Assembly: GCA_907165135.1 (NCBI GenBank)
Contig: OU015568.1
Span: 6,138,001-6,202,000 of the forward strand
Direction of reading: 5' to 3'
Length of the DNA: 64,000 nt
From: Oikopleura dioica
Lineage: Eukaryota > Animalia > Chordata
A model generated the notes under the pieces. It was not told the origin of the DNA, did no database searches, and was given only the letters and a program-made list of their open reading frames with translations. Below, one piece after another: positions 1-14,197 of the stretch. Made by a program: the position numbers and the translations under genes. Position 1 is the first letter of the stretch; each line of letters starts with the position of its first letter.

Positions 1-70
1 CGAGGATTTTTTGAAAATGACGAGACTTTTCGGCCCAATTTTAATAGACGGGATTCTTCGAGACTGAAAT

Positions 71-3000
71 GATTGTGACCCAAATTTTTAGTGGAATGGA
101 GCGCAGAAGAGCTTTCAATACTTTGAAGCCTCAACGCTCAAAGTTCTATCAGCACTCGGATAATAATCATGGCACTTATTATCGGTTCTTACGGGGCGTA
201 GGAACGGGATTTAACTATTGTGACTCTTTTCAAAGCGGAATGAGGCCAAAAGGGCAATATAAAGCTGATAAAAGTAACATGGAAGTTCACAAGCGTAATT
301 TCAATTCGCACTCGGACCATAACCACGGAACGAATATTGTTCAGTCCGAAATGTTTGCTAGATTAGAGCGGGATATGAAGAATTAATCTTTCCTTCTTAT
401 TGTGGCCCTTTTTCAAAGTGGAATGAGACCCAATGGCACTACAATTCATACATCCGCTATGAGACAGCATCATAAGTGGAATCATTTTTCGAAATTGGAA
501 AAAGGCTTTTGGGCTTTTATAATGAGATATTTTTGTGTACCCTTTCGAAAGCGGAATGAGACCGAGCGGAAAAGATATTCACAAGCACAACTTCAATTCG
601 CACCATTTTCATAACCATGGAACGAATATGATGAAGTCCAAAGTATCCGGCAAATTAGAGCGGGATAGAATCTCAGTCTTGAAAAACACCATTTTCTTAC
701 TCATATCATCTCATATTCATATCATCACTGTCTCCTGATTTCGATAAATCTCGATTGTGACCCCAACTAGTGGCTACGCGGGTGGTTATGAAAACCTTCA
801 TAACAAGAAACTGAATTTCCACAAAAGAACTATGGTCACCCATCACAGGAATAATCATAAATCAGCCGGGGATTGTATTTGTGAAATTTTTGCGAGATGT
901 TTTGTGACTCTGAAAGTCAATCTGCTTGCCGATTTATCCATAAGGGGAGCTTGAATCGACACCACAAAACTCATCATTTGTCGAAAGAATGGGAATTTAG
1001 ACTTGATTGTGACCCATTTGATAGTGGCATTTCTAAAAAAGAGATTTGCCTCAAGAAACAAATCTCGATTGAAAGTGAGAAAAAATATGGCTATTACATC
1101 CACAATAAATCTTTTGTTGGACATCATACCATCCATCATTTGCCAAAAAAAGAATAAAGTCGGGGTTGATTTTTCATTTTTTTTTATTTCGAGGTTGATT
1201 GTGATCCATTGTTAGCGGACTGCATTTCAGAAACAGAGCAATTTACAACAACAAAAAACAATTTTTGCAGCATCACAAAAAACACGGCCATTTTGAAAAA
1301 GGGATTGAAAGTAATTGTGACCTTGTAAAGTGGCGTGGACGTAAGAACAAAATCTAAAATAACCAAAAAACTTCACATGTCTTCGCATCACATCGCTCAT
1401 CATTCGCAAAATACAAGGAAAAAAGCAAAGGGATGAATTTTCAATTCATTGTGATCCTCTAAAGTTCCCCGTCGACTCAAAAACTAGACTTGCATCACTA
1501 CCGCCAGCATATGAAAAAAGTAATGACCAGAGCTCAGATGGGCGAGCTTCTCGGCCCGCGTCTGAAAGCTTTGATTCGCGAAGGGAAGGGGGATGAAATT
1601 GTATTTTGTTAAACGATTGTGGCCCTTTCTAGCGCTATTGATGTTCGATGTAAGAATCCAGCGATAAATGCGAAGCATACGCTCTCCCATCATGTCGCTA
1701 GTCACCTGAATATTCAAAAAATTGGAAAAGCCAACACGGCAATTTTGCTAGAAATTGTTCGAGCCTCTGAAGCGTATCAAGAGTTGGGATGGCTTTTTTC
1801 GCTATCTCTTGTTTTTTTAATTGCGGATTTGATTTTTAAAATTGTGATCCTTTGTCTAGTGGAGTTGATGTAAGAAAGAAAAACCCAATAATCCATCACC
1901 ATAGTTTCCTCTGCCATCACCTGATAAATCACCGTCGAGTTTATATCGCAAGAGGTACTAATGTCGAAACTTTGCGTTTTATGTTGCAAGGGAGGGATTA
2001 TTTTTGGATTGGTTGTGACCTTGAATAAGTGGCTATCGCACTGGGTGCTCAACCTTATCTTTGCACAGAGGACTAATGTTGCAGCATCATCGAAACAACC
2101 ATAAAGGAACGCGGATGAAAGATTTTTATTGTGACCCTCAATCAGTGGTCATCGCACGAGTACAAATAAGATAGTTTTAGATTCAAGAGCTTTGTTTCGC
2201 CACCATCATGCTAACCACGTCGATAAAAATCAGCGTCCCAACTATCGAAAAGAATGGATATCAGTCATTAAAATTGCTAGTTAATTTTTGTAAAAGGTCC
2301 CTTTCAGCGGGTACAGATTGTGATTCTCATTCAGTGGTTATCGGGCGAATGCTCAGAACCAGTTGGTTCTGTATTCATGGATTCTAGGTCGACACCATAG
2401 TACTCACCACATTGAAAAAGAAAAACAGTGCTCTAGCTGCAAAAAAGAATGGATATCAGTCAATCTTATTCCAAGTCCCGGTGATTGTGACTCTTTGTAA
2501 GCGGGTATCAACATCGAAAGCATTCGACCGAAAACTTTCGATTGCATAAAAGCCATTTTATGTCGCATCATGACAGTAACCATTCTTCTGAAAGGGATCG
2601 AAATATTTATTTGAAATTTCGAAGCGTTGAAGGTTTATTTTGATTGTGGCCCTTTCAAAGCACGAATAATTACGACAATGCTTCGATGCTCCGCCATCAC
2701 TTTTCTCGTCACGTGCACTCAAGTTTCCTAAAGTTTCCTTCGAAGAATTATAGCGTTAACGAGCTAAAGAGCTTCGTCTTAGCTTGGGATTAGATTATAG
2801 CAATTGCGGGTGATTGGGACCCTTTTCGAGCGGTTACAATTCGAAAGCGTCGAAGCCTGTTTTCTTCTTCCATAAAAATTACTTTATGAAACATCACAAA
2901 AACAACCATTTTATGGAATGGGACTATTTTTGGTCTGTTTATTACATTTGCGTTGATTGTGACTCTCCGAAGCGGGATGAAGTTGACTGCGAAGCCTAAT

Positions 3001-4492
3001 GGCCGAGGCAACTTCGTGTATCTCCATCATGGCCAAATGATTTACCATCACCTTTCGCATCACGGGGTTCCAGAGAATCTCGAGAAGCCGCTTTACAAAT
3101 GTAACATGAATGACTTCAAGTCAATTTTAGAAGGGATTGAATTTAATTGAACTAATGAGATTGTAATTACGGATGACTTGACATTAAGTGAAATTGTGAC
3201 TCTTAAAAAGTGGCATAAGGGCGAACGGGATGCTAAATAACTTCAATATGCCCCGACACCACTCAAATAACCACACTAATGCTTCTGAAAGAAAAGGCGG
3301 GATTTAAATCAGCCACTCTGCCTTACTTACGATTTACTTACGATTGTGGCCCTGTTTTAAGAGCGTACGATTCTAGGAGCACAAATCGAATGGTCGAGGG
3401 CATTATCTTTAGATTCCACAAAGGCCATATGATGAGGCATCATAACTGTAACCATCTTTCTGATCCCTCAGGTGGGGATCGAATTCATAATGGGAGTTGA
3501 TTGTGACCAAGCTAAAGTGGACTTTCGGAAAAGGGAGCTCCTTTCAGTAATGATATGCTTAGGCACCATTTCTGCAAGCACGAGTTCCTTCCTTTTGCCA
3601 AAAAGTTCAAAGTCGAAGAATTGAAAAGGCGTTTACCAGGTTCGGACTTTCAAAAATTTGAGCAATAAGGATTAGATACTTTTTGGGATGTATATCACAC
3701 GCAGAGTTTAGTTCGGTAAATTGTGACCCTTTGAGCGCTGGGAGGCCAGGAAGAAAGCCAGATGTGGCGATTCAGAGGCGGCATCACCAGCGAAATCATT
3801 TGCAGCATGCCTGCATACTTTGCAAATGATCGGATTCCTGAAAATAGTCATCGGTTTAAGTAGATCATTTTCCAAGAGGAGCATCGATCAAAAAATAACT
3901 CGAAGACAATATCACAGAGGCCATTTTATAAAAATACTTGGGTATATTGTGACCCTTTTAGCGCGGTAAGGCAAGCGAGAAAGCCAGATGTGTCGCTTCT
4001 GAAGCGGCATCACCAGGCACATCATTTGCAGAATAACTGCGTTCAATGGAAATGATCGGATTCTTGACATAATTTTTCGTTATTTTTTGCGGATGATTGG
4101 GATCATTTTCCAAGAGGAGCGACGATCAACATTAATAACTCGAGAATGATAAGACATCATCACAGAAATCACTTCATCAAGACTTACTTAGAATGGGATA
4201 GCCAAAGGCCCCACTTTCGGGACTGATTGTGACCATTTTTAGGGGAGCTACTATTCGAAATTTAACGTACACTAGGATGACAAGGCATCATCATCGAAAC
4301 CACTGTCCACATGGTACTCCTAACTGTTGTCCCGTCAATACGTTAGTTTGGGTTCTTGATCGTCTTCGATTTCTTGTCTCTGATTTCCCTCCTTCGTTTG
4401 GTTCAGTTCGATTGATTATTTTTGCTCTTACCAAAAATTTATCTTTTTTTAAAGTCTCAAATACCGAAATCGAATACCAACCAATATTTTAA
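71..4492 (+). other. Array of 26 intact plus 1 decayed exon-like cassettes, each encoding the His half (recognition helix, H-x4-H) of a BED-type zinc finger
   Basis: Each unit has (G/A/T)ATTGTG(A/G)(C/T)C followed 6-10 nt later by AG. First exon bases: 92, 236, 419, 552, 771, 917, 1025, 1216, 1331, 1465, 1633, 1860, 2030, 2146, 2335, 2502, 2661, 2831, 2973, 3211, 3362, 3518, 3736, 3962, 4115, 4243 (decayed copy at 3877). Skipping one base after the AG (phase 2) gives an open frame through H-[H/S]-x3-H in all 26, e.g. GMRPNGTTIHTSAMRQHHKWNH, GYRTGCSTLSLHRGLMLQHHRNNH, GYNSKASKPVFFFHKNYFMKHHKNNH. His codons vary CAT/CAC. The array continues beyond the window start. Confidence 0.85.
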
Positions 4493-4521
4493 AGGGTTCA
4501 ATTAGATAAAATATTAAAAAG

Positions 4522-6499
4522 TCCACTGTCAAATCCCATACCAAAGCCAGTCAAGCCAAGAATGCTCAGCAGCAACAACAGCAATTGGCCTCACTACAGG
4601 CCGCCCAAGCGGCTCAAAATCTTCCAATGCCTGGCGTCACTGGAATGCCTGGCACTTCTGGACTGAACATTCTCCCTCAGCAAGTGCTGCCAAAACCACC
4701 AAAGCAGCCGAAACAGAAGAAGTCGCCAGCTGGCGGAGTAAAGGCAGCACAGATGCAAGAGTTTGTCGCGATCTGCTCGGATATCATGACGAAAGTGTCC
4801 AAACACGAGCTTCCCGGCGACTTTTGGACTTCCGAGGAAATGTTCGAGTTCGTCTACGGCCTTGTCGAGCGACAACAGCGCGGAGAACCAGTCACTCAAA
4901 TCACCATCGAAGAAGCGCTCGAGTAAGTCTTTTCCTCATCGAACTCTTTTATCAATTTTATTAGTAAACTGAAGACACGCCACGAGTTCAAAGAGCAGAA
5001 CATTCTCGCCATCGAAGACGGAATGGCGCCTCCGACCAAGAAAATGAAAGTGGCAAACGACGAAGACGTCCGCACCATCGTCCAAATCTGGGAAAGCCAG
5101 CCAATGCGGATTTCGCTCGAAGACCATATCTTCCCAAGTAAGACTCTTCAATTTTTGAGCAACACTTTCTATCCTTCAATTTAGTTGACGACTACAGCCA
5201 GTTCTCTATCTCCCGAGTTCGATTGGACGGCGAATGTCTTGGCTTGATGCGATGCAATCATCCTCTCTGCGCCGAAAAGCCACTAGCCGACCGACTTCAC
5301 AAGTAAGCTTGGATGATCTTGTCATCTGTTCATAATGAAATTTAGGATTTGGTTCTCCTCGCGCACCGGGCAGCCACACAAGTACTCGGTCCGTCGCCAC
5401 CACGAGCAGTGCCACTTCGGAAAGATGCTCTCTCGATCTCAAATCATCGACGCTGCTGCCCTTGTGATTTCCGACTCGCAGCTTCCACTCGATAGCTGGT
5501 CCAAGCCATCATTCAAGCACTTCATCTCCAGCTGCGGCCAGTCGACCACTTTCAACAAGAACACGATCTCCGTCGAGGAAATCGTCGCTGCGATGCGAAA
5601 AGCGAATCGACCTCTTTCCGAATCTCATCGAATTGAGCTGATCAACGCTGGAAAAGCGATTCTCATCTACGAAACGGATCCAAACCGGGCTGAAGTGAAA
5701 CCAGAGCCAATCGAGAAGCCGGAAGAAAATGACGGCATTCAAATTGAAGAAATTGAAGGCGGAATCGATGATTCCATGGGAGAAGGTAAATTCTAGCTCC
5801 ATTTATGCTCGCTAACGTTGCTTTTTAGACATGCCCTTGTCCGATTTGCTTAACCAGCCACCGAAACCGCCTGCTCAGCTTTCGCTAGCCGCAGTAACTT
5901 CTGCATCTGGCGATGGCGGAGGAACTGCCACACCATCTGCGGCGTCAGGCGGGATGCCAACTGGTGCCACGGGCACCTCCAACGCTGCAAAGGCTCCACT
6001 TCCTCCCGGGAGCGCCGCGGCGGATGTTGTAGCTGCTGCGAAAGCTGGTAACGCTTCTGCTTCTGGTGGTGCAACTGGGGATCCTCCCGGCGCCGAAAGT
6101 GACGACGACGACCTCGAAGACGAGGATGAAGAGATGGAGGACGAGTCCGACATCCCGATAGACCAGGAGATCGTCAAATATCCTGGGAAGTGCACGGACC
6201 TCTATGCGGTGTACGAACGCTGGGCGCCGATTCTGTCCACAGAAGCGAAAGAAAAGCTCGTGGCGGACTTTTCTCTGAACGATCCTCTGTACCAGAAGCC
6301 AGAGGACATCGAAGACCCGGAACTGCGACTGACGATTCGAGACGAATGGGTGACTGTCTTCCCTGCCTGGCTGGCCAACTTCAAGCCCATGAATGCGAAG
6401 GACGACGGCTTCCAGCGGATACCACTTTCGGACATTCTGGCGATGCGGCGAATGTACAGAACTGAACTTCAAGCCCGCCGCGCTGTCCCTGCGAAATAG
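4522..6499 (+). CDS. BED zinc-finger protein with a hAT-transposase-like helical domain (domesticated hAT derivative); Q-rich N-terminus, low-complexity and acidic C-terminal region
   Basis: Exons approx 4522-4922, 4965-5137, 5185-5302, 5346-5785, 5829-6499, with GT-AG introns of 42-47 bp. Finger: YSQFSISRVRLDGECLGLMRCNHPLC...(phase-2 intron 5303-5345)...IWFSSRTGQPHKYSVRRHHEQCH, followed by LVISDSQLPLDSWSKPSFKHFISSCG, which resembles the post-BED helical domain of hAT transposases. No DDE catalytic region is seen. The 5' start is uncertain and the gene may be joined to upstream exons. Confidence 0.7.
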
Positions 6500-6651
6500 A
6501 AGCAGCTTTTTCAATTTAAATTATTCTACATGTAAACACATCCATTCGGATTTCACACTGCCTTTATCCTGCTTGCAGTTATCTTCTGCCGCCGCTGTAT
6601 CACAAATTAAAAAACTCGAAACTCAGAAAAAATACAAAATTGAAAAAGAAA

Positions 6652-7850
6652 TCAACCGATGACTCGTTCTCTTTTAATCGCCACTTGAAGCAGTTCATTG
6701 AAATCAATTTATTCGGTAAGAAGGTAAATGTAAATCTCAGCATTGTCTCGTTTAACTCGGAATTCACTCTGCATCGGTTCGAATATTTCATCAGGCCAGT
6801 CTGGATTTTCTGATGATTCTATGAGCTCGTCGATTTGCGCGATCTGAGTAAAAATAGTGAACAAAGCGTACTTCAAATAATCACCGTTTTGAGCGAGGTC
6901 TTGTCAAGAAACGCCATCAGAAACCATTTTCCACTGTCCTTGCAATAAATCGGGCTTCCGAATTCTTCAAAGGTTGGAATAAAGCCAACGCCTTCTCTCG
7001 GTGGGTTCCGCGGATTCACTCGCAAAATCGGTCGTCGTTCCGCCTCGTCTCGATCTTGGAAACGGACGTTGATCTTCGCGAAGAAACTGTTTTTCGGATG
7101 ATCTTAATTTTTCGCAATTGATTGAATGGTCAGTCGACTCACTGAGAAAGTAGTGCTCGTATCTATACGATCCAAACAGCACACAGTCTTCGTTTGCTTC
7201 CTGCATTACCTTCTTGTTGTACATTGTCAAGTCCGCGATGGGAGTTATTCTAAAACAGTGTTCCTCTACGATTTCAATTGAACTTACGATGCAGGACGTT
7301 CGAATTCTTCGACGGTTTCGAGAAACATGTGTGTTTCCATTTTCTTGGTCGACTTCACTTTTACGAATTTTCCATGAATTGGCCCAGTTCCTCCGTAAAA
7401 AATGTAGATTTCCCCGTCGGCGACCATCTACAGAGTATAGTTTTATTTTCGCAACAATCCTTCACCTGCTTGAATTTGTCTTCGATATCTTTTGGACTTG
7501 AATTGTGGTTGAGGTTGTCGTCTTTTGGAAAGAAACCGGGCATATAGTGGAACATGTGGTAATCGCATTCAAGCACTAGAAAAAACAGCCTAAATGGACT
7601 TAAATGTTGACAGTATCTTACAAGTGGCGAAATCAGTCTTATCAATGAGAGCTCCCGCGCAACCAAATCTGATGCCCTCGTCGATCCTCGCAATTCTAGC
7701 GTAGTTGTTCAGCATTTTCTTCTCTTCGTCTCCACGCCACGGGAAAGAGTTCTTTTCCATTTCATCGCGATCGGTTAATCTTTCGTTCGTGTACTCTCTC
7801 TTTTGTACCTCGGCCACCAAGAAGTCAGAGCAAAGCAGCTGGAGAAAAGA
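6652..7850 (-). pseudogene. Degenerate trypsin-like serine protease homologue (non-catalytic; frame-disrupted or unusually spliced)
   Basis: Minus-strand pieces ERLTDRDEMEKNSFPW (cf. RIVGG..FPW), RFGCAGALID (cf. CGGSLI) and EEFGSPIYCKDSGKWFLMAF (cf. GDSGGPLVC..W.L.G; catalytic Ser motif absent). The frames do not join cleanly. Confidence 0.45.
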
Positions 7851-8086
7851 AATAAAATTAAGTTTTTCATGAAAATGGCAAATTATGACTAGTTTAGAAA
7901 GAAAATGAAGATGTTTAGCTTTTTCGTACAAAAAGCGCAAAAGATATCAGATGCTCTAGAAATCATCGCGTTTGAAAACGGAGATTTGAGAAAATCAGCC
8001 GATGACTCGTATATTTTTCAAACTCGCCACTTGAAGCAGGTCAATGACAAAAGCAATATCCGCAACATTCAAAAAGCCGAACTATC

Positions 8087-10714
8087 ATGTTGAAAATTCT
8101 TGTTGCACTTTTATTATTAAAAGAATCAGAGCAGCGAAAATGCAAAAGCATTTCAAGAAGATATTTTTACAGAAAAAAAGCTTTGAAATCAACGAGGAGT
8201 CAGAATCAGCAGATAGATTTAACGGAAAACGACCAGTTCTTGTTCTTGACAGAGTCCAGATGGGGACGAGAAGTTCTTTTCGACAGTCAGGATAAATGCG
8301 CGACAAGTTCTTATGGAATCGGAACGCGTTTATTTTTGAGAAAGCGGTGCAATGCTCATTTTTGCTCGATTTACCACGGACTCAAAGGCGACAACTTTCT
8401 TTCTCCGACGATTTTTCTCACTTCACAGAATCGAGTCCACATTCAAATTACTGCCAAATCGGCAGTTAATTACGCAGTCGAGGTTTTTTAATTTTCTCAA
8501 ATGCACTTTTCAGACCTTTTTAGAGCCAAAGAAGCGTTCCTCTCAGAACTTGGTGCGTTTTATCAGTCAACTTTTACAAAAAATCAATAGAAGTCAATAT
8601 CGCGGGTTCAATCGAAAGATTCGAGCTCAAGGATGAAGTGAAATTTGACGACTCGAAAGGACGGTTCTTCTTTGGAGGAAGCTCAGCGAATATTGGAGCG
8701 TCGGTCATTTTTTCGAAGGCAGTAATTCGCAGAGATAGGTCTGTAAACAAAGAAGAACTCAGCGAAAACCCCGGAGAACTTATCTTCAGCAATGGAGTAA
8801 TGAGAGCTGAGGAGAAACGAAGAGTGTTGAATCGCTTGGTCGCGCATTCAAAGTCGAAATATCCTTCCAAAGACACGTGTCCCACAATATTCAAAAAAGC
8901 GAACAAAGGAGTTTCTCCGAAAGAGTTTCAAAGTCCAGTCGTTCGAAGAGTCGTTATGAAATGCTGGAACTTTGGAAAAATCATGGACAGAATTAACTGC
9001 CTCAATCGCGAATTGGAGAACAATTTTATGAAGCGACTTGAACAGACGCGCTTTGAATCGTTAAATCAAAATCGGAGAAGAATGAAGAGTCTTTTCCAGT
9101 CGTTCGATGGTCTTCAATGCGATGGAACGCTTCTCACCATCTTTCTCAAAAGCATCGATTCTAAGAATTACCTCTTTCCTTATCTCATGCTCGCTGCGGA
9201 TAAAAACTGCGCCCTGGCACTTCTAGTTCTCGCGAAAATCCACGAAAGTTCCGGCGATCTACTTACGGCGGCGATGTACTACAGCTACGCAGCGCAGAAA
9301 GCTTTCGAAAGAAGACGAGACCATCCCGAGCAAATGGTCTTCGTCGACGAAATTCGACTAAACGATGAAAAGGCGCTGGATCTTTTCGAAGGCGAGTCCG
9401 GCGGCGTCTACAACTGGTTGCTGGATCAAGCCACGAAAGGCGTCCAGAGCGCGCAAAATCACCTGGCGAGCGTCATCTACCACGGAAAAACTGGCGTCAA
9501 AAAGAATCTTTCCAAGGCTTTCAAGTTCTTCCAACAGGCGGCAAAATCGGAAACGACGGATCCAGACGCGACTTACAACCTTGGATTAATGAAGATGAAA
9601 GGTCAAGGTTCTGGAAGAGACATCGAAGGAGCGGTCGAGGACTTTCAAAAAGTGGTGGAGAGCAGTGCTCATGCTCCATCTCTGAATGCTCTGGGACACT
9701 ACCATTTGCAGGAAGAAAAGAACGCGGAAAAAGCAAAAGAGTATTTCGAAAAAGCGGCGGAACTGGGCGACCCTGACGCGATGCACAACCTTGCGATCAT
9801 AAACAAGCAGAATCTCATTCCCAATCAGCCGAGAGACGATGTCTACTGCTTCGGCCAATTTTATCGCGCCGCTCAACGAGGCCACATTGAATCCGCTTAT
9901 CAGCTGGTGCTCTTTTATTCCGACGGAATTCCAGGAAGTTTACCGGTTGTTCATAAAGACGCGGTTGTTTGGGCCAAGTTTGTTTTATCTGGAACCTCGG
10001 TGGAATTGCGCCAGACACTTCAGAATGGTTTGAAATTCGCGAAAAAGCAGCCAGGAGCGAGATAAAGATAGAATTGACATATTAATTAACCTTTATGAAT
10101 ACGGCTTAAGATCTTGCTCAAGCACTTTCTTTCTGCTTTTACGGTTTGAGCGCGATCGCTTCTTCTGATTTGGGAGCTTTCAATGCTGCCTTCTTGATTA
10201 GCGAAAAATTCAACAAAGAAGCAGATTTGGACTTGAGATTTTTAAAACTAGCGGTCGAAAACACAACGTATTTGCCCTACCGTCAAGCTCAAACACTTCT
10301 CGGAGAACGACTGGGTCCGGAAGAAGGAGAACGGCATCTCGTAGCGGCGGCAAAAGGAATGTGCCCTCGAGCAATGTTCAGTCTCGCTTCGGGCACGCGG
10401 GAATTATCGTAAGTTTTTTGAGACGCATTTATCTTGAAGCAATTTGAAATTGAAAGGAATTCGAGTCTGAGCGAGCTTGGACTGCTCAAGTTCAAAGACG
10501 ACTACCGACGAGTTCTTTTGAAGCGCTGCGCCAGGGTATGAAAAGGGGTTGAAATGATGGCTAATGGATTTAGTGGGGAAATGAAGAATCGATACCTTGT
10601 CAAATCTATCTACTGAAGTTTTACCTGCGAGACTACGGTCCACTTGCGATGAAAGTTTCCGGAGCAGCGATGACTGTTTTGTTTGTTCTTTCTTTAGTTG
10701 TTCGGTATTTCTGA
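8087..10714 (+). CDS. SEL1L3: SEL1L3-like protein (signal peptide, ConA/LamG-like domain, Sel1 repeats, C-terminal TM)
   Basis: MLKILVALLLL leader; RCNAHFCSIYHG...SPTIFLTSQNRVHIQI and FDDSKGRFFFGGS resemble the SEL1L3 N-terminal domain; Sel1 repeats (GVQSAQNHLASVIYHGKTGVKKNLSKAFKFF; GDPDAMHNLA); hydrophobic tail ending at TGA 10712-10714. Confidence 0.8.
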
Positions 10715-13237: not shown

Positions 13238-14197
13238 CTAGGGAAACTCGATGAAAAATGAGCTTTTTTCTGGGATCAGTAGAGAGGGAGTATAATACAG
13301 TTTTAGAAAGCCCAGAAGCTGAGGATCATTTTGACTATTTACAGTGTGGGGTTTGGGTCATGTCCTGGGGCGTTTTTGGGCGTCTAAAGTCCGGAAAATG
13401 GGGGTAGTTCCAGAAAAGGGATTAAAAAAGTACCGGTAGTCCATCCTAAGAACGAGCGGCTTGGCTAAGTTGTAGAGGAGGCTCCGGCGATTCAGAATCT
13501 GTATAGAAACCTATTGGGACCCCCACATTCTAGAGGCGCTAGAGGCTCTAGAAGTTGAGGAAGTTACCTCAAAATCGGTACTTTTTTACGATAAATTGCG
13601 CTAAGGGTTATATTTTTATCCGAAATAGTCCTCAAAACGTTCCAATCAATTTTCGGATGTCAAAAATATCGTTTGGGGTCATTTGAGGTCACTTAGGGTC
13701 ATTTTTTGAGGAAAAATAGAATTTGGCCGAAACTCTACCCGAATAACCTCAAATGACCCCAAACGATATTTTTGACATCCGACAATTGATTGGAACGTTT
13801 TGAGGACTATTTCGGATAAAAATATAACCCTTAGCGCAATTTATCGTAAAAAAGTACCGATTTTGAGGTAACTTCCTCAACTTCTAGAGCCTCTAGCGCC
13901 TCTAGAATGTGGGGGTCCCAATAGGTTTCTATACAGATTCTGAATCGCCAGAGCCTCCTCTACAACTTAGCCAAGCCGCTCGTTCTTAGGATGGACTACC
14001 GGTACTTTTTTAATCCCTTTTCTGGAACTACCCCCATTTTCCGGACTTTAGACGCCCAAAAACGCCCCAGGACATGACCCAAACCCCACACTGTAAATAG
14101 TCAAAATGATCCTCAGCTTCTGGGCTTTCTAAAACTGTATTATACTCCCTCTCTACTAATCCCAGAAAAAAGCTCAATTTTCATCGAGTTTCCCTAG
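13238..14197. mobile_element. 960-bp foldback/MITE-like palindromic element with ~452-bp arms and 6-bp flanking direct repeat TAATAG
   Basis: 13238-13689 is the reverse complement of 13746-14197 with about 4 mismatches seen; 56-bp spacer; TAATAG at 13232-13237 and 14198-14203. Confidence 0.9.

Follow-up and report, generated by a model that had tools for sequence, protein, structure and literature searches.

Genes and features at the locus

The window analysed here, a 64-kb stretch of Oikopleura dioica DNA, carries a row of short alternative exons, which we call cassettes, followed by the ordinary exons of an adjacent gene (4522-6499).

92..4330, + strand: 26 alternative exons in a tandem array; each codes for the His half (H-x3-5-H) of a putative CCHH finger
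4522..4926, + strand: next fixed coding exon, open from its acceptor (AG 4520-4521, phase 0)

A His-x3-5-His motif is present in all 26 short exons, and all 26 open in one phase (1 nt followed by codons) after an AG that is preceded by a short sequence tag. They share no consistent start codon, each opening at its AG, and many of their donors look non-canonical. The cassettes and the first part of exon 5346-5788 in the adjacent coding block are paralogous. Array units are 105-355 nt long, and TRF did not detect the array as a repeat. Scanning metagenomes with a three-selector pattern gave no Oikopleura array among the matches listed, which were CRISPR arrays and satellites.

The zinc finger is putative, its label resting only on a C-x4-C ... 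H-x4-H pattern. No Pfam family was found at E <= 1, zf-BED included, for the window exons, P0015, P0007 or P0014, and a PDB sequence search with the host protein family gave no relative; these queries were single exons, not a joined exon-cassette-exon model. An exact-protein look-up of a window ORF found no match, and the AlphaFold model of the constant finger region has a pLDDT of 55.

Exon 4522 is the probable target of the cassette donors, an inference made without RNA data. In the Norwegian ortholog, about 70 conserved codons with no in-frame ATG follow its acceptor. In two transcript-like contigs, L135 and L136, the downstream introns are gone but the sequence just upstream of this acceptor is retained; in L135, the last cassette runs unspliced into exon 4522. 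Because both keep that upstream sequence, and neither reaches a spliced cassette joint, the joining of cassettes to exon 4522 is unproven.

Conservation of the tag

The tag, (G)ATTGTGACC(C), alternatively written GAUUGUGACCCUU or GATTGTGACCC, was found in 26/26 units (window 71-4242). Its end lies 7-11 nt upstream of the G of the first AG in 25 of them; the exception is unit 22, where the second AG after the tag is used, not the first. Columns TTG.G are constant (26/26), T at position 5 occurs in 24/26 units and A at position 1 in 23/26, and positions 7-10 are conserved in 20-21 of the 26. Across the units, information content is 1.0-2.2 bits per column in the tag versus 0-0.5 bit in the flanks. 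Scored with a PWM, the array sites have a median of 17.4 bits, and the best other site in the window, on either strand, reaches 13.3 bits. The remaining 60 kb of the window contain no site comparable to the array tags on either strand, and the PWM scan did not find the tag before any of the five acceptors of the adjacent gene. An Rfam search returned no family.

Read as protein, the tag would encode Cys-Asp-Pro. Its Cys codon is TGT in 24/26 units, TGG in 2/26 and TGC in none (0/26), and in 8/26 units, the one third expected by chance, the TGT shares an open frame with the cassette. Identity among units is 79% for the 10-mer; for the cassette bodies it is 51.5% pairwise, versus 47.6% for random 75-mers. 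The cassette bodies are almost saturated in divergence, and the 10-mer is an island of conservation. Chance use of frame, a codon that is never TGC and this island in saturated sequence lead us to conclude that the tag is conserved as nucleotides and not as protein, in agreement with an earlier reading of the window made from its letters alone (hereafter the sequence-only reading). The counts behind that proposal were reproduced: a GT-to-AG span of 13-17 nt, about 8 of 26 tags in frame, a Cys codon that is never TGC, and no tag before the ordinary acceptors of the adjacent gene (none at the five examined).

A complement of the tag beside a donor

The sequence-only reading had seen no complementary docking site in the window, and searches by complement and by RNAduplex gave the same result. 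The window's + strand holds no match to the tag complement with fewer than two mismatches, and RNAduplex over window positions 1-9000 returned nothing near the perfect complement. The best in-window partner reaches a mean of -12.9 kcal/mol versus -19.5 for a perfect complement; the top-ranking sites of the RNAduplex search lie in coding sequence at 8191 and where cassette 18 begins. A candidate docking element downstream (window ~4487; L012:454) was not accepted, its z being only about -2.6 to -3.1. Bidirectional pairing could be hinted at by a GGTCAAAT-like element, weak but conserved, that precedes the downstream fixed exon; alone, it is not significant.

The upstream constant intron had been named as the place to look for a docking sequence, and an exact and unique complement was found there in the Norwegian ortholog. 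Contigs L002-L012, which come from the same or sister lineages, all end less than 1 kb from the 3' end of the array. The Norwegian O. dioica reference scaffold FN653025.1 (L133), whose orthology to the window locus was confirmed by P0015 and by Ank/SAM/Sushi synteny, carries a single AAGGGTCACAATC in the intron behind a fixed Cys-half exon, at +3 to +15 from the GC donor (L133:3077-3089; donor context AG/GCAAGG) and about 390 nt before the first cassette. This docking sequence, AAGGGUCACAAUC, is the exact 13-nt Watson-Crick complement of the tag, and exactly one + strand copy of GGGTCACAAT occurs in the L133 locus. The 11 cassettes of L133 have the same tag core at the same 6-11 nt spacing. 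Duplexes of the docking site with the 10 local selectors average -21.3 kcal/mol in dG (z = -7.3; next best -15.3), and complementarity in the Norwegian selectors is extended to 14-15 contiguous bp. The L133 fixed exon (2957-3074, 118 nt) is a paralog of window exon 5185-5302, with which it shares length, phase 2 and the motif LDGEC..C..P.CAEKP; the cassette acceptor phase fits its phase-2 end in 26/26 cases. At a paralogous locus (L134), neither selectors nor a docking site were found.

A unique exact complement beside the donor of the Cys-half exon directly supports one option of the sequence-only reading, a Dscam-like selector sequence. We consider it likely that the tag is an RNA selector of this kind, acting in an intron-end zipper, with the reservations that there are no RNA data and that the docking site could be read only in L133.

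Predicted pairing and variation of the candidate selectors

All 26 window selectors pair with the L133 docking site, at dG values from -14.2 to -28.6 kcal/mol (mean -20.8), versus -7.8 +/- 3.0 kcal/mol for 1000 control segments taken at the same distance before other AGs. The tags are listed below as candidate selectors, with dG in kcal/mol for the duplex with the Norwegian docking site.

71..82, + strand: selector 1 (GATTGTGACCCA); AG 90-91; dG -22.8
216..227, + strand: selector 2 (TATTGTGACTCT); AG 234-235; dG -15.6; C9>T keeps a G.U pair
398..409, + strand: selector 3 (TATTGTGGCCCT); AG 417-418; dG -18.0; A7>G keeps a G.U pair; without candidate branch A
531..542, + strand: selector 4, degenerate (TTTTGTGTACCC); AG 550-551; dG -14.2, the weakest
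753..764, + strand: selector 5; AG 769-770; dG -20.4
900..911, + strand: selector 6 (TTTTGTGACTCT); AG 915-916; dG -18.5
1005..1016, + strand: selector 7; AG 1023-1024; dG -21.8
1197..1208, + strand: selector 8 (GATTGTGATCCA); AG 1214-1215; dG -26.4
1313..1324, + strand: selector 9; AG 1329-1330; dG -16.8
1447..1458, + strand: selector 10; AG 1463-1464; dG -15.4
1615..1626, + strand: selector 11 (GTGGCC variant); AG 1631-1632; dG -22.6
1840..1851, + strand: selector 12; AG 1858-1859; dG -16.8
2011..2022, + strand: selector 13 (GGTTGTGACCTT); AG 2028-2029; dG -23.6
2127..2138, + strand: selector 14; AG 2144-2145; dG -17.8; local hairpin with exon start, -8.4
2316..2327, + strand: selector 15 (GATTGTGATTCT); AG 2333-2334; dG -16.7
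2483..2494, + strand: selector 16; AG 2500-2501; dG -25.0
2642..2653, + strand: selector 17 (GTGGCC variant); AG 2659-2660; dG -23.2
2812..2823, + strand: selector 18 (GATTGGGACCCT); AG 2829-2830; dG -28.6; T5>G breaks one pair
2955..2966, + strand: selector 19; AG 2971-2972; dG -24.0
3192..3203, + strand: selector 20; AG 3209-3210; dG -17.0
3342..3353, + strand: selector 21 (GTGGCC variant); AG 3360-3361; dG -22.5
3499..3510, + strand: selector 22; in-phase AG 3516-3517 (second AG after the motif); dG -23.7
3719..3730, + strand: selector 23; AG 3734-3735; dG -21.2; conserved in L010
3945..3956, + strand: selector 24; AG 3960-3961; dG -22.3; conserved in L010
4095..4106, + strand: selector 25 (GATTGGGATCAT); AG 4113-4114; dG -21.2
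4225..4236, + strand: selector 26, before the last cassette; AG 4241-4242; dG -23.4

In register, 81% of 16 positions pair; when the sequences are slid by 1-4 nt, 29-51% do. Core positions 1-10 show 18 transitions of the kind that leaves a G.U pair in place (A>G or C>T) and none of the pair-breaking kind (G>A or T>C; Fisher p = 4e-6 for the direction of variation), together with nine transversions. The absence of TGC fits this wobble-preserving pattern. Two selectors have a T5>G mismatch to the docking site, and unit 4 is degenerate. Preservation of pairing was judged on the selector side, against the single docking sequence that could be read.

The selector is conserved in three lineages. In a diverged lineage, a 10-mer identical to that of selector 26 (L012:128-137) precedes the ortholog of the last cassette; protein identity there is 73%, and the flank upstream of the 10-mer is unrelated and unalignable.

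Counting against the selector reading, part of the wobble asymmetry could reflect the less constrained 3' half of a protein-binding site.

A model of cassette choice

We propose that the host gene would have two fixed 5' exons, the second encoding the Cys half of a CCHH finger and ending in phase 2, followed by one His-half exon picked from the long alternative row and then by the fixed exons from window position 4522 on. The intron after the fixed Cys-half exon would begin with the docking sequence. Since a single docking site faces many selectors, only one docking-selector helix, of 11-15 bp, could form per transcript. Such a helix would close the intron like a zipper, with the donor 2 nt from one of its ends and the acceptor 7-11 nt from the same end, and would loop out all cassettes in between. 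Cassette acceptors are inferred to be weak unless zipped, because a polypyrimidine tract or branch site would hardly fit between tag and AG. As a cassette donor has no docking site, it is inferred to be spliced to the ordinary acceptor at 4521, which would give one cassette per mRNA. The helix in vivo, the activation of acceptors, the mutually exclusive choice and the joining of cassettes to exon 4522 are all inferred. The predicted helix also covers positions +3 to +6 of the donor, the binding region of U1 and U6, and could inhibit rather than activate.

A broader claim is possible, and we hold it only tentatively. The locus would represent a chordate intron-end zipper, independent of arthropod Dscam, in which a docking sequence fused to the donor is contested by 45 or more acceptor-adjacent selectors, and otherwise dead acceptors are activated by the apposition of splice sites. 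One recognition-helix half of a split finger would be picked, perhaps stochastically per cell, giving a splice-generated repertoire of nucleic-acid-binding specificities.

Alternative readings

The tag could instead be a dedicated branch-point or 3' splice-site element, its UGAC giving the branch A and the complementarity to the donor being secondary. The branch consensus is the loose yUnAy, with which UGAC agrees, and the branch-binding sequence of U2 is GUAGUA. The candidate A lies 9-13 nt before the AG with little room for another branch site, and the ordinary intron ending at 5829 has a CTAAC at a similar distance upstream of its AG, about 13 nt. However, a branch A at every site, as a dedicated element of the kind raised by the sequence-only reading would have, is lacking: 4/26 tags, all of intact cassettes (398, 1615, 2642, 3342), carry G at the candidate position with no other A nearby, and a pure branch-point reading is disfavoured because of them. 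The invariant ATTGTG also pairs poorly with GUAGUA, no ordinary acceptor in the window is preceded by the motif, and the exact 13-nt complement beside the donor is left unexplained. We regard a branch-point element as unlikely.

If the tag were bound by a protein that recognises specific RNA or DNA sequences, perhaps the finger protein itself, and so marked the cassette acceptors, the donor complement would be a second, inverted site. Such a site might well be short, strand-specific and strongly conserved and keep a fixed distance to the AG, as the tag does, and an invariant 5' half with a variable 3' half could be a footprint. This reading appears improbable, however, as the substitutions almost only keep G.U pairs, the 14-15 contiguous bp of complementarity in the Norwegian selectors are not predicted by it, and there is no protein evidence.

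There is very little to recommend a third possibility, in which the tag mainly pairs with the opening bases of the exon behind it, the resulting local stem hides the AG, and choice consists in opening one stem. The hairpins that the sequence-only reading pointed out at cassettes 14 and 18 are real, with units 1, 14 and 18 at -7.8 to -8.4 kcal/mol, but they are not general: the 26-unit mean is -5.1 kcal/mol versus -4.1 for other windows of the same cassettes, the difference comes mostly from pairing of CC with the GG that follows the AG, and such stems are far weaker than the docking duplex at -20.8. Hiding of the AG is anecdotal.

Scarcely credible, finally, is a functionless relic (Cys-Asp-Pro coding or a repeat fragment copied by duplication) or a DNA-level promoter or recombination signal: the L133 fixed exon does resemble the tag (TAT TGC TGC GAC CCG, Y C C D P) and flanks are copied together with exons in tandem duplication (PMC6071210), but the tag is kept while cassette bodies are near random identity, is retained in lineages with saturated intron divergence and is in frame only at the chance rate. 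A promoter element, also raised by the sequence-only reading, is unsupported, since the opening of every cassette falls exactly at the AG and in one fixed splice phase, with no consistent start codon.

Relation to known systems

The preferred reading, selectors before each cassette paired with one docking site, has close parallels outside the chordates. In the exon 6 cluster of arthropod Dscam1, a selector precedes each tandem alternative exon and one docking site follows the upstream constitutive exon (PMC6071210, PMC8791459, PMC12962786), with only one docking-selector duplex at a time (PMC6071210). The Oikopleura locus resembles it in its large tandem array of homologous exons, each with a conserved selector, and, so far as the Norwegian ortholog L133 shows, in its one upstream docking site. 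Unlike in Dscam1, the docking site of L133 begins 3 nt past the donor, overlapping +3 to +6, and the selectors end 7-11 nt before the acceptor, so the duplex would directly appose both splice sites. The locus differs further in its GC donor, its many non-canonical-looking cassette donors and its tunicate host, and its exons, for which there are no experimental data, would vary half of a putative zinc finger instead of an Ig domain.

In small mutually exclusive clusters (14-3-3zeta, Mhc, MRP1, srp and Dscam exons 4, 9 and 17), intronic sequences compete for one partner, and such competing structures arise by duplicating one stem arm along with the exon (PMC6071210, PMC4691838). These clusters, all arthropod, differ from the Oikopleura locus in being small and in usually having their docking site downstream. 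In PMC6071210 and the Dscam papers, the worked-out docking and selector systems come from insect or other arthropod genes, with Dscam1 the extreme, and no report of a comparable Dscam-like device in chordates was found. If true, another large system that arose independently in a tunicate would show the mechanism to be a general outcome of tandem exon duplication, as predicted (PMC6071210). The compact layout, with docking at the donor and selectors at the acceptors, suits minigene tests of helix-activated splice sites.

Stems that close introns are familiar from yeast, where they join 5' and 3' parts and shorten the effective distance between reactive sites; those stems are single and constitutive, usually link the donor and branch regions, and do not select one exon from many. 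If our reading is true, the locus would be an uncommon example of a putative zinc finger whose recognition half is diversified by splicing, and it raises the question of the purpose of such a repertoire of binding specificities. In Drosophila lola and mod(mdg4), common exons are joined to one of many finger exons, giving many DNA-binding specificities. Their alternatives are groups of 3' terminal exons that encode whole fingers and are partly trans-spliced, whereas the Oikopleura cassettes are internal exons that appear to complete a finger split by an intron.

A tagged cassette array and its host gene

The cassettes (alternative exons) at window 71–4242 form 26 units of 105–355 nt, each carrying a tag of the form (G)ATTGTGACC(C)(T) before its acceptor AG. 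The TTG.G of the tag is invariant (26/26), other core positions are conserved in 20–24 of 26 units, and the flanking columns hold nearly zero information. A sequence-only reading had described this array, and its observation was confirmed in every particular: the GT-to-AG span of 13–17 nt was borne out, with 7–11 nt from the end of the tag to the G of AG; conservation as nucleotides rather than protein held, as TGT is in frame and open in only 8 of 26 units, the chance rate; the apparent Cys codon is indeed never TGC (TGT in 24 units, TGG in 2); and the tag, not seen by that reading before the four ordinary acceptors of the adjacent gene, gave no weight-matrix site before the acceptors of the coding block 4522–6499. 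The reading phase after the tagged AG is identical and open in all 26 units (1 nt, then codons; the second AG past the tag is the in-phase one in unit 22), yielding 15–38 residues with H-x3-5-H at the end, mostly preceded by [LMF]-x-[RQ]. Cassette bodies are near saturation (pairwise identity 51.5%, vs 47.6% for random 75-mers and 79% for the tag 10-mer); TRF detected no repeat array at the cassettes, and no Rfam family covers the array.

A weight matrix of the 26 tags scored a median of 17.4 bits in the array and at best 13.3 bits elsewhere in the 64 kb on both strands. The top two off-array matches, 13512–13523 (+) and 13912–13923 (-), are one 12-mer, TATTGGGACCCC, inverted about 400 nt apart, and are probably terminal repeats of a small transposable element unrelated to the array. 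In metagenome contigs (L057, L112), several matches to a three-selector pattern proved to be bacterial CRISPR arrays with repeats ending ATTGTGAC(C/T), a coincidence unrelated to the array.

The block 4522–6499 matches CBY35039.1 and P0015 (a 510-residue unnamed Oikopleura dioica protein), and in the last exon the window lineage and the Norwegian reference share 81% identity. The host family has no Pfam relative, zf-BED included, and no PDB relative; a "zinc finger" label would rest only on the pattern C-x4-C ... H-x4-H. This CCHH pattern is split by an intron in the downstream block: exon 5185–5302 (118 nt) has CNHPLC...RLH before its phase 2 end, and the exon from 5346 opens with ...HKYSVRRHHEQCH. 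The start of the latter exon is paralogous to the cassettes, which share its splice phase; the cassettes therefore need an upstream Cys-half partner exon ending in phase 2.

A probable docking site in the Norwegian ortholog

The sequence-only reading had seen no docking site (a complement of the tag) in the window, and our search agreed: no + strand complement with fewer than two mismatches is present, and an RNAduplex scan of window 1–9000 gave a best partner mean of -12.9 kcal/mol vs -19.5 for a perfect 12-mer. By way of the cDNA-like homolog P0007 and then P0015 we reached 21.8 kb of FN653025.1 (L133, the orthologous Norwegian locus), which is syntenic with other Norwegian-lineage contigs of the gene, with Ank, SAM and Sushi genes downstream. 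Upstream of the P0015 gene model (L133:10001), 10 kb of sequence contain 11 cassettes with the same tag, 6–11 nt from the AG, and the tag complement exactly once on the + strand.

Fixed exons and tag complement in the Norwegian ortholog
L133:2516 (ATG) to 2807, first fixed exon, ending in phase 1, intron next
L133:2957–3074, second fixed exon (Cys half), 118 nt, phase 2 end, reading VDDNPVFDAARVFLDGECQNLVYCCDPKCAEKPTFKRFF
L133:3077–3089 (+), tag complement AAGGGTCACAATC

This complement paired with the local selectors at a mean dG of -21.3 kcal/mol (z = -7.3; runner-up site -15.3). The second fixed exon has the length and phase 2 end of window exon 5185–5302 and shares with it the core LDGEC..C..P.CAEKP. 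The terminal AG of the Norwegian exon precedes GCAAGG, a good donor of the GC type, which puts the docking sequence at intron +3 to +15. With T/C as the first base of most cassettes, the split codon AG + Y encodes Ser, and next comes the Gly with which most cassettes open. The fixed exon also contains GCGACCC (C-D-P codons), which pairs with the docking site in a local fold (-16.1 kcal/mol, 101-nt segment). At the Norwegian paralog locus L134 (P0016), both tags and docking site are absent.

The 5' module (the two fixed exons at L133:2516–3074 plus a cassette) partly duplicates the downstream module (exons ~4976–5139, 5185–5302 and 5346 onward), and in the full protein the same CCHH motif would occur twice, once variable and once constant. 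At L133:3024–3038 the fixed exon has the codons TAT TGC TGC GAC CCG (Y C C D P), similar to the selector's TAT TGT GAC CC (Y C D P), and the CNHP codons in the paralogous exon (window ~5256–5265) match the docking region CAATCATCCT exactly; from these codon likenesses, both pairing arms may descend from Cys-half coding DNA.

Pairing statistics and competing readings of the tag

All 26 window tags pair with the L133 docking site, at dG -14.2 to -28.6 (mean -20.8), compared with -7.8 ± 3.0 for 1000 control segments lying equally far before other AGs. When aligned in register, 81% of 16 positions pair (median 13), falling to 29–51% when shifted by 1–4 nt, and positions 1–10 are paired in 88–100% of units with G.U counted. 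Variation in the 10-nt core consists of 18 changes (A>G or C>T) that turn a Watson-Crick pair into G.U and 9 transversions, with no pair-breaking G>A or T>C change (Fisher p = 4e-6). On sequence evidence, the direction of this variation is a signature of RNA pairing by the + strand tag; the absence of T>C changes also accounts for the missing TGC codon. Some Norwegian selectors reach 14–15 contiguous bp, e.g. GATGATTGTGACCC(T) with (A)GGGTCACAATCATC.

The best reading is that the tag is the selector of a Dscam exon 6-like docking-site/selector system, with no RNA evidence at hand and the docking site read in L133 only. A protein-binding site cannot be excluded, but it predicts neither the wobble-only variation nor the extended complementarity. 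The position of UGAC would suit a pure branch point; however, four intact cassettes have G at the branch-A site, and the invariant ATTGTG and its complement at the donor would be left unexplained. The stem between tag and own exon, suggested in the sequence-only reading as a means of hiding the AG, is genuine in three units, yet weak across the array as a whole (mean -5.1 kcal/mol vs -4.1 elsewhere in the same cassettes). Conservation of the tag amid saturated flanks, together with the fixed splice phase across cassettes, contradicts a relic or promoter.

The proposed docking-selector system is of the same type as Dscam exon 6 (features per PMC6071210) but has a distinctive geometry, with the docking site adjoining the donor and every selector adjoining its acceptor. 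The helix would close the intron and bring both splice sites to one end of the stem, and a single docking site would permit one helix per transcript. Since the short tag-to-AG interval leaves little room for a pyrimidine tract and branch site, we infer that cassette acceptors are poor unless zipped to the donor. The first splice would remove the docking site, leaving the cassette donor with the ordinary acceptor at 4521. The helix would overlap donor +3 to +6 and may affect U1 and U6 binding there in either direction. A full-text literature search returned no paper linking Oikopleura to selector or docking sequences or to such an array; new here are the sister-lineage test of the docking site and the pairing statistics for 26 selectors.

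Cassette donors and the joint to exon 4522

The exon from 4522 has about 70 conserved codons past its acceptor in the Norwegian ortholog, with codon-type substitutions and no in-frame ATG, which is evidence for a putative internal exon. Two transcript-like contigs (L135, L136) have four downstream introns removed and keep the sequence just before its acceptor. L135 begins inside the last cassette and reads through unspliced into exon 4522; it may be pre-mRNA, or the assembler's choice among many low-coverage joints, and the cassette-to-exon-4522 joint is unproven.

Past the His half, 23 cassettes (window 200–4220, e.g. 370–375, 662–667, 869–874) have a G|GA(T/A/C) motif, 20–60 nt ahead of the next acceptor. 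Thirteen of these motifs coincide with a codon boundary (2 of them after a stop codon), 4 lie in phase 1 and 6 in phase 2; in-phase GT donors are present in units 1 and 26. The motif could be a non-canonical GA/GG donor, or could instead pair with AUCCU after the docking core in L133 (5'-GGGAU-3' with 5'-AUCCU-3').

Five lineages retain an element, GGTCAAAT / GGGTTCAATTAGA, 25–45 nt upstream of the exon-4522 acceptor, and three of them have it in duplicate.

Positions of the GGTCAAAT / GGGTTCAATTAGA element
window 4483–4504
L012:436–480 (contig of a diverged lineage)
L133:9760–9780 (Norwegian ortholog)
L135:113–150 (transcript-like contig)
L136:20–55 (transcript-like contig)

It is a partial selector complement (about -10 to -13 kcal/mol, z ~-3) and could be a weak downstream docking site, as in a bidirectional model, or merely the acceptor's branch region. 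The window, L012 and L136 share the first 44 nt of exon 4522 (4522–4565) without a change, with 2 differences in the Norwegian locus and 1 each in L135 and the haplotype contig L011, while later codons vary freely; this suggests a possible RNA-level constraint (splicing enhancer or structure) atop coding.

Conservation and turnover of the array

L012, a metagenomic contig with 73% protein identity in exon 4522, spans the last cassettes. In the orthologous last cassette its 10-mer is identical to that of the window, the adjoining upstream sequence is unalignable and cassette differences are codon-type. Past the ortholog of cassette 26, L012:295–395 holds an additional cassette, which has an exact tag of its own and a G|GAT end; the counterpart at window 4330–4480 is unalignable and has no cassette, and the array therefore gains and loses units. 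Haplotype L011 carries a deletion of the additional cassette's acceptor and, in place of the cassette before it, a 58-nt tandem repeat. GATTGATTAT at window 4410–4419 may be a decayed tag. The last cassette (window 4243–4330) is longer than the others, with coding conserved through HCPHGTPNCC (L012 HCPVGVPNCC; Norway ..CSLHCPAHV); it ends at an in-phase GT donor, TTA|GTTTGG, at ~4328, and may add a further Cys/His cluster.
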